From: Aplysia californica
Taxonomy: Eukaryota
Length of the DNA stretch: 64,000 nt
Assembly: GCF_000002075.1 (NCBI RefSeq)
Contig: NW_004797412.1
Location: forward strand, 1,340,478 to 1,404,477
Direction: 5' to 3'
Below, piece after piece: positions 6,622-44,900 of this stretch; position 1 is the stretch's first letter; every line of letters begins with the position of its first letter. The notes below the pieces were generated by a model, which worked only from the letters and a program-made list of their open reading frames with translations, was not told the origin of the DNA and did not search any database. The position numbers and the translations under genes were made by a program.

Positions 6622-7133
6622 CCACACATAAACTCAACCCAACACAAACTCATCTGCACCCAACCACCACGCCCCATTTTCCCCTTTTCTCCCACCTGTC
6701 CACCAGATGGGTCATCACAACAATCGACCCAGTGGCCAAAAACTACCCCCTGTTCCGGCCTGACGTCGTGTCCAGCTTCAACTGGACAGCCACCTACCAG
6801 CTGGGCGCGGACATCCCGAGGCTGCTGGGACAGTTGAAGTCTCAGGAACCAGATCCACACAAACAATACGGTAGCACTGGCATACTAATTATAATTGTGA
6901 AGATAACAATAAAATGAAAATTTTAAAAATTACTACTACTACTACNNNNNNNNNNNNNNNNNNNNNNNNNNNNNNNNNNNNNNNNNNNNNNNNNNNNNNN
7001 NNNNNNNNNNNNNNNNNNNNNNNNNNNNNNNNNNNNNNNNNNNNNNNNNNNNNNNNNNNNNNNNNNNNNNNNNNNNNNNNNNNTAATAATCATAATCATG
7101 ATGATTATGGTAAATAATAAGAATATTTATCAT

Positions 7134-7200
<67 letters not shown>

Positions 7201-41900: not shown

Positions 41901-44900
41901 GAGGGCACAAAGCGGCCATCGAGGGACAAACTGATCGACTTGATCGGTGACCTACAAAAACAAGCGCGTTTGTTTTCTGGACTGCGAATCGTGCGATCGG
42001 GTGGTTTGCAGCCAATCACAACAAGGCTGAGTCACGTGTCCATTTTGACCCTTGAATACAGTAAGTAGGTACTCTGGGAATTCCCGGTTTCGGTCTCACG
42101 CCTTTGACCGTCTTCTCACATCTCTCAGCGGGTTTGGTGCGCTCATAGGCCTTGAGGAAAAAGGAGACGTATAAGAAGAAGGAAGAGGAGCACTACAGAG
42201 GGAGGGTGGTAAGAGTAACATGGAGGGAAAGAGATAAGTTGAGAGATACATTATATGCAGAGACCTAGATCCAGCAATGTTTACAGTGCTAGAACTTCAA
42301 CTAGGTCTCTGATATGTGGGAAGTGAGAAATATACAAGAAAGGANNNNNNNNNNNNNNNNNNNNNNNNNNNNNNNNNNNNNNNNNNNNNNNNNNNNNNNN
42401 NNNNNNNNNNNNNNNNNNNNNNNNNNNNNNNNNNNNNNNNNNNNNNNNNNNNNNNNNNNNNNNNNNNNNNNNNNNNNNNNNNNGAGTATCGTAGGCATAT
42501 TTTATGTATTCATGGGTCAAAGGTTCTGCCAATCGAAGCCCGGTTTACGCCCTCTGTGTCGTTGCATGTATTTTAAAGGTTTCTCTATTTTAACTGCCAG
42601 GTCGTCAGGGTACAATCGCTGCGGGGTTGCAGTGTGCTCTGATACCACAAAAAAGCGACCCGACCCGATCGCGTATGTGGGTACCCCCTATTAGACTGAT
42701 GAGCACTGAGCTAGGCCCAGCCGCCAAACCCAAACAATAATGCCGGACACCCGATTAAATTTGTGCCGGAGAGAGGGCTGGCTCACGGTCGCGCGGTATC
42801 TAGTGAATAGAGGGTAGTGGTTTATATCTATGGTTTTGACTTAGCATTCAAACACAAGTACATTGTTTGTGTCTGCCAAAAATACGAATGAGGCCTAGCA
42901 AGGGACTTTATTTAGATTTTGTCAAAGTTTGCTTTAACGATTTAGCGACATATCATTAATAAGTGCTTGTGCTTTCAACCCAGATGGCTTGTAACCACCA
43001 TCGATCCCATGAACAAAAACTTCAAGTTGGACAGAGCTGACGTGGTTTCCAGCTTCAACTGGTCAGGGACGTACCAACTCAGGGCGCATGTGCCCAGATT
43101 GATGGGGATGTTGAGACCAATCCAGAAAAAGACGGAAAGAGATTATGGTATCTTTCTTTTTTTTATTATAGTAGAGGGTTTTAAGCTGGTCGCAACTGCA
43201 TAAGGTCATATGAGCGCCAAGGGGTGGGTGTCAACAGAGAAGTCTTTACAGGGAATCAGACTTTGCTCACCTCTCTAGCTTCAATAGCACAAGGCCTGCT
43301 TCAACTATTTGTTTTTGTAAAGTGTTTTACGGCGTTCGCAACTGCATAGGTCATATGAGCGCGCGGGACACTCCTAATGTTTTCAGTTGGTAGGAAATTT
43401 TGAATTTTGCCCGGGTGGCGGCCGAAGCCTACTCTTATCGATTTTAGACCACCAAGGGATCTTTAACGTGCGCAACTTGCACACGGGCCCTCCGAGATTT
43501 TTCGACCTTGTCCGAGAAGGCTAGGTGTAGATCTTTCCTACCAGAAGATCAGGGGTGTAGCAGAAAGACAGCAGTAAGGAGGAGCCAAGGAGTAGCAGTA
43601 GAAAGGCTGCAGAAAGAGTCAGGAGCCCAGAGGAGGGGGCAAAGGAGGTGAGGGGGTGGGGGCAGAAAGTGGAAATGAAAGCAGACAACAGAACATTGCT
43701 AGAGAGCAGGAAAGGCGATGAAAGGGGACAATTTTAGAGAAGAAAATTTTTCGGTCGCTACCCGGATTCGAACCCGGTCCCTTTGAATGAGAGGCCAACA
43801 CCTTAACCTCTAGGCCACGAGAGCCCCCGCTTCAACTATCAAGGCTCCCCAGAAATAACAGGTCACAAGAAAACATACAAAGGAAAAAGAGGAAAATGAC
43901 AATAGTAAAGATTAGGAAAGAAAAAGCAGCAGTTCCCTGTTGTAGATCAGGCACAGTTATGAGCGTGACAAGAATCAGCCCATTTACAATTCTACTGTGC
44001 TTGAACGAGAAATGTCCCCCCTTTGGGAATGGCCTAAAGACACTTCGGTCAGATGTGCTGCCCCGGGGGTGATTATGGCATGCCTAAAGGCCAAAAAGCC
44101 ATACTTGATATTAGTCTTTTAACATTTTCCGGTAATTATTATTACTAGGTGTCTAAAAAGGGGGATCCGTTTAAAGGGCAATAGCTCGGTCGTCTTTAAA
44201 CCAATTTCAACAAAACTTCGAAGATATCAAATTCATCTAGATCTATGAGAACATTACATTGGTCAGTATGAAAAAGAAATCAAACGACAAGTTCGAAAAT
44301 TATCAGGTTTTAACTATTTCAACCAAAATTGAGTGAAATACAAAACTTGGTAATTTCTTAACAATCAACCATATTGGTCCATTTCAAATAGTCACTGTCT
44401 GTACTGTGGAGAGAAAATTAATTATACAAAATTAATATTGCCAAATAAAACCAGGGAGAAAATTGCTGTTCATATCTCGAGGTGTTGACCCTTCCTCTAC
44501 CTACTCTACAAGCTCCAATATGCTACTTGAAATTTTGAACAACCCCGTGGTATGTTTCTGGGTCAGTTCTTTGGACATCAGGTTCAATATTGAGTTTTAA
44601 CTGTTCGAACGTTTGTTGGTTGTTTCCGTAGACCTTGTCCATCAAATAACCCAAAAGTGATAATTGAAAGAGCTCGAGTTAGGGAAAAATAGGTGACCAT
44701 TCATTTACAAACGTTCAGCTTACAATTCGTTCCCCACACCGTTCATACACCCATACCAGGACCATTCTTGACGTATGGTGAGTGGCCCCGTCCCACTGAA
44801 ACCAGGCCTCTACAGCATAATCCCCCCCCCCCCAACCCAAGCTTCTACAATACTTTCTCAGCACAGTGAGCTATTCATCTAATATGACTGTCGCGGTTCT

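Follow-up and report, generated by a model that had tools for sequence, protein, structure and literature searches.

An undescribed Asp-type branch of GT10 fucosyltransferases in heterobranch gastropods with a candidate change of acceptor

Introduction

What becomes of a GT10 fucosyltransferase when its catalytic Glu is replaced by Asp? The question is raised by two neighbouring GT10 genes, A and B, which lie on the plus strand of an Aplysia californica contig within the 64,000-nucleotide stretch of DNA analysed here (the window). The general base of Helicobacter pylori FucT is E95, and to our knowledge the GT10 enzymes studied in bacteria, plants and mammals all use Glu in this role; we know of no characterised member with Asp, whose side chain is about one methylene shorter, at this position. 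In Arabidopsis FUT11 (AtFUT11) the E158A mutant is dead and the Y192A mutant nearly dead (PMC12929593), and in human FUT9 Glu137 and Tyr168 are acceptor-recognition residues that belong, together with Phe73 and Trp330, to the acceptor residues conserved across the human alpha-1,3/4-fucosyltransferases (PMC12717137). Literature searches yielded neither a paper on the Asp-type clade described below nor a GT10 enzyme whose base had been mutated from Glu to Asp. We find that A and B belong to an undescribed branch of GT10, and the clade-wide presence of Asp where relatives carry the catalytic Glu suggests that this branch probably still transfers fucose, onto a different target.

Results

Gene A corresponds to the annotated protein P0001 (536 aa), and the translation of its exons 1-6 and 8 is 100% identical to that protein, with in-frame joins and GT-AG sites. 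Exon 1 (1284-1885, plus strand, as are all exons of both genes) contains the start codon, a type II membrane anchor and a long disordered stem; it matches P0001 residues 1-201 at 100%, its donor site having been set by the spliced match, and the AF2 model of the gene A protein has a helix at residues 6-40 followed by low pLDDT. Exon 2 (4452-4532) was placed by spliced match to P0001 and precedes exon 3 (5475-5603), where the GT10 N-terminal (acceptor) domain begins with a C..C pair and the motif ADAVLF. Exon 4 (6707-6870) reads WVITTIDPV ... FNWTATYQLGADIPRLLG, with the codon of Asp278 at 6726-6728. The donor domain begins in exon 5 (9728-9938; AWFVSHC and Arg349; PF00852 E 6.5e-11) and continues in exon 6 (11605-11764; PF00852 E 1.6e-16) with the donor motif FYLAFEN...YITEKF, and the last exon (14505-14685), again located by spliced match to P0001, encodes an RW...C..C tail and a TAA stop. 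A tblastn search with P0001 at relaxed thresholds found no gene A copy of exon 7 (P0001 residues 450-476) in the window's read letters; the assembly gap at 12168-12267 probably hides it. The gap nearest to exon 4 begins 76 bases beyond that exon's donor site.

Gene B was assembled as a spliced model without a reference, which we used for alignment, tree building and dN/dS estimation, and its database searches were run exon by exon; gaps were left unfilled in both gene models. Exon 1 (32137-32909) has a start codon, an open frame, a hydrophobic N-terminus with membrane anchor, a repeat-rich stem and a GT donor in the phase seen in gene A. It is followed by exon 3 (38842-38970), exon 4 (42984-43147), which reads WLVTTIDPM ... 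FNWSGTYQLRAHVPRLMG with the Asp codon at 43003-43005, exon 5 (47793-47994; PF00852 E 6.4e-10), exon 6 (50221-50380), exon 7 (50798-50880) and a last exon ending in a TGA stop (53304-53466). No exon 2 was found in the read letters of the window with tblastx and tblastn at relaxed thresholds, and a gap at 37534-37787 lies inside the gene B intron where this exon is expected. The frame is intact in all seven exons found, with canonical GT-AG sites and the phases of gene A, and no exon found in either gene contains a run of N.

Both genes carry the donor domain of GT10. PF00852 matched exons 5 and 6 at 42.7 and 60.9 bits in gene A and at 39.4 and 57.1 bits in gene B, against a cut-off of 23.9; it was also found on P0001, and a genome scan agrees on the GT10 domain. 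For the N-terminal domain (PF17039, Glyco_tran_10_N), there is a precomputed hit on the whole of P0001; taken exon by exon, gene A exons 3 and 4 fell short of the cut-off of 28.7 bits, at 17.8 and 18.5 bits respectively, and single exons 3 and 4 of gene B gave no match. The Pfam comparison proposed in the earlier note on this DNA thus places PF00852 on both genes and PF17039 on the complete protein of gene A. The AF2 model of this protein has pLDDT above 90 over residues 180-520, the catalytic domain, and its top Foldseek matches were FUT9, mango FUT13, AtFUT11 and H. pylori FucT, human FUT9 being the best (TM 0.79-0.82, E 2e-19). Both genes are predicted to encode Golgi-type membrane proteins of type II topology, in which a long stem precedes the GT-B catalytic domain. 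Proteins A and B share 51-55% identity, a divergence at which synonymous sites would be saturated, and by sequence the genes are tandem paralogues of one subfamily of GT10, the alpha-1,3/4-fucosyltransferase family.

TTIDP is encoded at 6717-6731 (gene A) and 42994-43008 (gene B), on the plus strand in both, and is followed by the acceptor-motif sequences exactly as the earlier note had written them. The region singled out there runs from 6707, where exon 4 of gene A begins, to 43147, where exon 4 of gene B ends, and in both genes the QR-W junction that precedes the motif is an Arg codon split by a canonical GT-AG intron. Chance does not explain the motif, because an exon 4 profile searched against 1.84 billion representatives retrieved only proteins with the same DP motif.

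Asp278 of gene A was paired by phmmer with FUT9 E137, and a 69-sequence profile placed it in the column shared by FUT9 E137 and AtFUT11 E158, with the PYG Tyr column corresponding to FUT9 Y168 and AtFUT11 Y192. No Glu occurs in the exon stretch up to FNW (residues 271-297) of A or B. In these alignments Asp occupies the catalytic-Glu column of both genes, as had been claimed, and they are also what suggests where the Asp278 carboxylate would sit relative to the donor. At the PYG Tyr position gene A has Leu and gene B has Met. Of the four acceptor residues that the human alpha-1,3/4 enzymes (FUT3-7, FUT9) have in common, Glu137 and Tyr168 are therefore replaced; the alignment around Phe73 and Trp330 is too poor to place them reliably.

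The closest characterised proteins are human FUT9 and the Lewis-type alpha-1,3/4-fucosyltransferases (PDB 8D0O-8D0X; best phmmer E 8e-19). Shared with FUT9 are the GT-B fold, type II topology, an FNxT glycosylation site, the C-terminal C..C pair, the FxLxFEN...Y.TEK donor motif and the equivalents of R202, N246, E255 and K256. The identity to FUT9 is only 23%, however, and the snail proteins differ from it by Asp for Glu137, Leu, Met or Phe for Tyr168 and Gln for the Arg of TYR, and by a multi-exon gene with a long, acidic stem. The core alpha-1,3-fucosyltransferases (insect FucTA, Arabidopsis FUT11/12; PDB 9S6A) align in the donor domain, the base column and the PYG Tyr column and likewise have a C..C motif after the catalytic domain, but AtFUT11 retains the base Glu158 and acceptor Tyr192.

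To place A and B among their relatives, we built the GT10 tree that had been suggested for this locus. It gathers the Asp-type proteins into a well-supported subfamily of 20 proteins from at least 10 heterobranch gastropod species, monophyletic at SH-aLRT 99 and recovered with the exon 4 columns removed (UFBoot 100, SH-aLRT 98). Every named member is from a heterobranch gastropod; among named proteins, the subfamily is restricted to euthyneuran heterobranchs, spanning sea hare, sacoglossan, pond-snail and land-snail lineages. One member is encoded on a 1523-base, mRNA-like contig by an unbroken frame of 465 aa, and tandem expansions occur in Physella, Lymnaea and Bulinus. The nearest relatives are heterobranch "FucT C-like" groups (P0029-P0035 and P0036-P0045; Aplysia copies on contigs C79, C241 and C459), which form one heterobranch-only group of 36 rows with the Asp-type clade (support 99). 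These sister proteins are also multi-exon, are 40-47% identical and share AWFVSHC and M356, but they keep the Glu (T[DNP]EAP or REPP) and the Tyr of xYG. Proteins named FucTA form a separate group (support 100) far from the Asp-type clade, so that A and B do not group with them.

The two halves of the protein show opposite patterns of conservation. On the acceptor side, D278 and P279 are present in 20 of 20 clade members, where 73 of 74 other GT10 proteins have E in the base column; Q302 is likewise found in 20 of 20, versus mostly R elsewhere. Position 311 is F in 15 members, Y in three and L and M in one each, compared with Y in 69 of 74 others, such that 17 of 20 members lack the acceptor-binding Tyr of PYG. 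On the donor side, R349, E402, N403, Y409, E412 and K413 are invariant in the clade rows that cover them (19-20 of 20, including gene B) and in 16 of 16 sister-group rows. R349, N403, E412 and K413 thus bear out the earlier note's view of an intact donor-binding half, for A, B and the clade alike. That note had also read YRxDSD as changed to YQLxAx and PYG to LLG or LMG. This holds for Aplysia but does not describe the subfamily, whose consensus is TYQL[DH]SD...[LIV]FG and whose hallmark is W..[YF][TN]xDP[AS], TYQL and [LIV]FG; most members still have FNxT and DSD or HSD, and the loss of DSD and the LLG/LMG variants are extras specific to Aplysia. His342, in the FUT9 Asn195 column, was considered as a second clade-specific switch and rejected, as His occurs in 22 of 74 other invertebrate GT10 proteins.

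We asked whether these changes could mark non-catalytic proteins of the Golgi or secreted space that bind GDP-fucose or a glycan. Both the general base and the acceptor-contact Tyr are altered, Aplysia A and B have in addition lost DSD and the aromatic residue of PYG, and gene B sits on a long branch. A dead enzyme would nevertheless have no reason to keep the base position acidic in all 20 members or to hold its pyrophosphate and fucose contacts (R349, N403, E412, K413) invariant, and the way in which tandem copies have repeatedly multiplied in Physella, Lymnaea and Bulinus resembles the diversification of working transferases. We consider loss of catalysis improbable; judged by what is conserved, an active enzyme is the better reading.

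The replacement could instead be neutral, with Asp standing in for Glu on the same acceptor and the enzymes making ordinary Lewis-type linkages (Fuc alpha-1,3 to GlcNAc of LacNAc or LacdiNAc) or core alpha-1,3 linkages. E to D is a conservative exchange, and at least two further independent origins in the sample (P0041/P0042 and P0114), making three in all, indicate that the position can accommodate Asp. Nothing has changed on the donor side, FNxT and DSD/HSD persist in most of the clade, and snail tissues contain alpha-1,3-fucosyltransferase activities that act on LacNAc and core GlcNAc (PMC8699351). Within the clade, however, the exchange is coupled throughout with loss of the motif Arg and of the Tyr168/Y192-equivalent hydroxyl, and in AtFUT11 the Y192A substitution nearly abolishes activity (PMC12929593). 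The clade also falls outside the FucTA (core alpha-1,3) group, and the same genomes encode many Glu-type GT10 proteins that could cover the ordinary tasks. We therefore regard an unchanged acceptor as rather unlikely, though it is the alternative to which we give the most weight.

The Asp trait marks a well-supported subfamily, which argues for selection rather than decay. The earlier note had drawn the same conclusion from the presence of TTIDP in two diverged paralogues, and selection stands; independent retention in A and B does not, since the tree indicates that their Asp motif was inherited from an ancestor of the euthyneuran heterobranch gastropods.

Finally, we assessed whether gene B might be a decaying duplicate, leaving only gene A of consequence. 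The protein search returned no model for gene B, exon 2 is absent from the read letters, exons 6 and 7 are present twice, and its branch is 2.7 times longer than that of gene A (0.77 versus 0.28), with substitutions at family-conserved residues (K396M, P438A and D383G); the long branch and these changes could reflect relaxed constraint. In contrast, the seven exons found are open, with canonical splice sites in the gene A phases, and retain the catalytic and donor residues. Comparison of gene B with its near-copy C gave a dN/dS of 0.28; synonymous and non-synonymous changes are equal in number, 10 each, against a ratio of about 1 to 3.5 predicted under neutrality. The second copies of exons 6 and 7 (matches at 51469-51633 and 52042-52131) lie in a plus-strand repeat block (49985-52171) in which 937 bases occur twice, flanking a gap at 50922-51021; because the copies are 99.8% identical and separated by that gap, the repeat is probably an assembly duplicate. 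Decay of gene B is accordingly very unlikely in our estimation.

Discussion

On balance, and with moderate confidence, we favour the reading that the A/B subfamily comprises Golgi fucosyltransferases that are active, with Asp serving as the base, and that act on a changed acceptor; activity, donor and acceptor change are all read from residue patterns. Asp took the place of the general-base Glu when the subfamily arose and has been kept since, with the GDP-fucose-binding half unchanged; the TYR Arg became Gln, and the PYG Tyr gave way to Phe in most members, to Leu in gene A and to Met in gene B. The reaction would be an ordinary inverting fucosyl transfer with GDP-fucose as the donor, in which Asp278 would remove the proton from the acceptor hydroxyl, and the reshaped pocket may admit an acceptor that differs from those of the GT10 enzymes studied so far, which act on LacNAc or core GlcNAc sites.

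A GT10 branch with a wholly different acceptor has precedent in FUT10 and FUT11 (POFUT3 and POFUT4), protein O-fucosyltransferases of EMI domains (PMC11949838). Like the Asp-type clade, these belong to GT10 and have multi-exon genes; no protein named FUT10 or FUT11 is among the 120 best relatives.

More specifically, the Asp-type clade might supply a fucose linkage of heterobranch snails, such as Fuc alpha-1,3 on the GalNAc of LacdiNAc, or transfer fucose to fucose or to a non-glycan acceptor, in which case a shorter base and the absence of the Tyr hydroxyl would have adapted the structure to that acceptor. We know of no enzyme cloned for such linkages, and hold this proposal to be quite unlikely as it stands. 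The LacdiNAc example is the difucosylated LDN antenna common to Biomphalaria and Schistosoma larvae, and fucosylated glycans of heterobranchs matter for schistosome compatibility, with most of their enzymes unassigned (PMC8699351).

Having kept Asp, with a changed acceptor pocket beside an unaltered donor site, the subfamily amounts to a natural experiment on acceptor retuning in GT-B fucosyltransferases. Should the proteins prove to be ordinary Lewis-type enzymes, they would still show that Asp can act as a GT10 base. The tandemly expanded, clade-specific candidate genes of Biomphalaria, Bulinus and Lymnaea form a short list that is directly testable.

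Gene models of the two paralogues

The window was drawn from a 927 Mb assembly of 4332 contigs (assembly G000, contig C142; G000:C142:1340478-1404477), and a six-frame scan located TTIDP twice within it, at 6717-6731 in gene A and 42994-43008 in gene B, both on the plus strand. In each gene the motif is followed by FNW[ST].TYQL, just as the earlier note had quoted these strings. The gene A product is present in protein databases as P0001, a 536-residue protein named 'alpha-(1,3)-fucosyltransferase fut-6 [Aplysia californica]', which is matched at 100% identity by seven plus-strand exons: exons 1 (1284-1885), 2 (4452-4532), 3 (5475-5603), 4 (6707-6870), 5 (9728-9938), 6 (11605-11764), and 8, the last (14505-14685). 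Every junction is GT-AG and in frame, which places the N runs 6946-7083, 8485-8614, and 8658-9227 within introns. The 27 residues 450-476 of P0001 have no gene A counterpart in the read letters of the window; the gap at 12168-12267 probably hides the corresponding exon, and the presence of these residues in P0001 suggests that transcripts were used to complete the public model.

Gene B was reconstructed by comparison with gene A, and its joined protein, which has no reference, was used in local analyses only. This placed seven exons on the plus strand: exons 1 (32137-32909), 3 (38842-38970), 4 (42984-43147), 5 (47793-47994), 6 (50221-50380), 7 (50798-50880), and 8 (53304-53466). All seven have GT-AG sites and the phases of gene A, with no internal stops. 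Exon 2 was not found in the window by the same comparison, and a gap (37534-37787) lies within that intron. A 937-base block holding exons 6 and 7 (49985-50921) reappears at 51235-52171, differing at 2 positions (99.8% identity). Its first copy stops exactly at the gap 50922-51021, and the repeat probably arose in assembly and not by true duplication of the exons.

An aspartate aligns with the catalytic-base glutamate

Exons 5 and 6 of both genes matched Pfam Glyco_transf_10 well over the cut-off, while Glyco_tran_10_N gave a weak match for gene A exons 3 and 4; both domains were found on whole P0001, and GT10 membership, for which the earlier note had proposed this check, holds. An AlphaFold2 model of P0001, built from a 69-sequence alignment, reached pLDDT >90 over residues 180-520 and returned human FUT9 as the top Foldseek match (TM 0.79-0.82, E 2e-19), followed by mango FUT13, Arabidopsis FUT11, and H. 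pylori FucT. The model begins with a membrane helix that leads into a disordered stem, the layout of Golgi type II transferases.

When QRWVITTIDP of P0001 was aligned by phmmer with QKWIWMNLESP of FUT9, D278 fell on chain residue 100, which is E137, and both residues are equally spaced from the aligned Trp. In a profile built from 69 relatives, D278 shared a column with FUT9 E137 and a Glu of AtFUT11, which is E158 because the same offset also lands on Y192 and E197, and a MAFFT alignment of 125 GT10 proteins put Asp in that same column. In the P0001 model, D278 lies three residues beyond strand 271-275. FUT9 Glu137 is described as the likely base (PMC12717137), H. pylori FucT Glu95 mutants are virtually inactive (PMC4202792), and E158A abolishes AtFUT11 activity (PMC12929593). 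The three alignments agree with the earlier claim that Asp replaces the catalytic-base Glu in both genes, and since neither gene has a Glu between QRW and FNW, there is no alternative Glu close by.

The Asp-Pro proteins form a heterobranch clade

Searching 1.84 billion representatives with an exon-4 profile built from both genes gave 17 matches; among these, all 10 single-stretch matches examined carry W..[YF][TN]xDP[AS]. A word search with P0001 added further members. The named members, from Aplysia, Elysia (two species), Plakobranchus, Physella, Lymnaea, Bulinus, Biomphalaria, Candidula, and Bradybaena, are heterobranch gastropods without exception. The 20 Asp-Pro rows of a 110-row tree grouped together (SH-aLRT 99), with genes A and B as sisters (support 98), and were nested in a 36-row heterobranch-only assemblage (99) whose remaining members keep Glu. 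The FucTA group lies far away, and the clade proteins are not FucTA-type. Removal of all exon-4 columns again recovered the clade (UFBoot 100, SH-aLRT 98), upholding the distinct GT10 subfamily that the earlier note had proposed to look for by tree. Database labels for these proteins are automatic only (fut-6, FUT3-like, FucT C-like), and our literature search found no paper on them.

Several clade members lie on shared contigs (five in Physella, three in Lymnaea, and two in Bulinus), suggesting tandem arrays similar to that of the window. One member, P0012 of Bulinus truncatus (874 aa), has a 600-residue Cys-rich N-terminal extension before its GT10 domain that may reflect either a genuine fusion or the merging of gene models.

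Acceptor-side residues differ and donor-side residues are retained

We then compared the clade (20 rows) with other GT10 proteins (74 rows) in P0001 numbering. D278 is Asp in 20/20 clade rows versus Glu in 73/74 others; P279 is likewise invariant versus S, P, C, and others, R271 versus mostly V, I, and R, and Q302 versus Arg in 52/74. Position 311, the Tyr of PYG in 69/74 other proteins, is Phe in 15 clade rows, Tyr in three, Leu in gene A, and Met in gene B. In the 69-relative profile this position equals FUT9 Y168 and AtFUT11 Y192, both acceptor contacts (PMC12717137, PMC12929593), and Y192A leaves AtFUT11 nearly dead (PMC12929593). Of the rebuilt acceptor motif described earlier, GAD/RAH and LLG/LMG are real but represent extra changes specific to Aplysia, as most clade members still have DSD or HSD after TYQL. 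On the donor side, R349, E402, N403, Y409, E412, and K413, together with the conserved cysteines, are invariant across the clade, gene B included, in line with the largely intact donor-binding half that had been noted. The clade proteins thus fit GT10 in fold, domains, and donor motif but lack its catalytic Glu, and do not match two of the four conserved acceptor residues of Lewis-type enzymes.

Loss of the Tyr hydroxyl and the motif Arg across the clade points to an altered acceptor pocket. Judging from sequence, we consider it reasonably probable that these proteins perform inverting fucosyl transfer, in which Asp278 would act as the base and the changed pocket would receive a non-canonical acceptor. 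Some snail glycans carry fucose on both sugars of LacdiNAc (PMC8699351), and such a doubly fucosylated product is, speculatively, one candidate. The E-to-D substitution is conservative, yet the pattern is clean across the whole clade and open to direct testing. A neutral swap with the acceptor unchanged seems unlikely. Because the base position is always acidic, the GDP-fucose site untouched, and the genes repeatedly expanded, we favor working over dead transferases, and a non-catalytic binder, which fits these features less well, is quite unlikely.

Outside the clade, Asp also replaces Glu in P0041/P0042 (SRDPP, within a sister group) and P0114 (MRDST), both with a PYG-type Tyr, so that the substitution arose at least three times among the sampled proteins. 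P0041/P0042 are from transcript-sized contigs and group with a set from Elysia and Plakobranchus; P0114 is from ENA.

A third copy argues for constraint on gene B

Separately, gene B might be decaying, given its long branch (0.77 versus 0.28 for gene A) and its altered family-conserved residues (K396M, P438A, and D383G). Some 54-68 kb upstream of the window, inverted on the minus strand, is a third GT10 copy that resembles gene B (C142:1272588-1286778; loci L027, L028, and L032). It is 96-99% identical to gene B in DNA over exons 3 and 5-8 and 75-82% over exon 1; its exon 4 position, where an Asp would be expected, falls within a 1125-N gap. Over 208 codons gene B and this copy gave dS 0.076, dN 0.021, and dN/dS 0.28, with 10 synonymous and 10 non-synonymous changes against a neutral expectation of ~1 to 3.5, which argues for purifying selection on the gene B type. 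Decay of gene B is considered very unlikely.

Other GT10 copies and repeats

Counted per exon, Glyco_transf_10 matched the genome 38 times, indicating a large and diverse GT10 family in Aplysia. Multi-exon paralogues on contigs C79, C241, C459, and C237 (loci L023-L026) retain the Glu, with diverged residues around it (KTDEAP, TREPP, TKEPP, QEMEP). Upstream of gene A, a short plus-strand open stretch (649-708) is 70% identical to the end of exon 5 (P0001 375-394), with a stop just downstream, and may be what is left of a further duplicate. In gene B intron 5, a weak plus-strand exon-3-like match (49514-49645; 30% identity to P0001 229-271, E 0.005) may have arisen by chance or from an exon copy that has since decayed. 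Between the genes lies a BEL/Pao-type LTR retrotransposon (about 20543-29929), broken by gaps, with open frames for reverse transcriptase, Pao peptidase, integrase, and DUF5641 (21375-24699) and direct repeats of ~250 bases (20543-20791 and 29684-29929) that are ~95% alike in translation. An interspersed repeat of ~200 bases also occurs in introns of both genes (10193-10405, 35958-36180, 43614-43840, and 46278-46488), with ~65-80% identity in translation.
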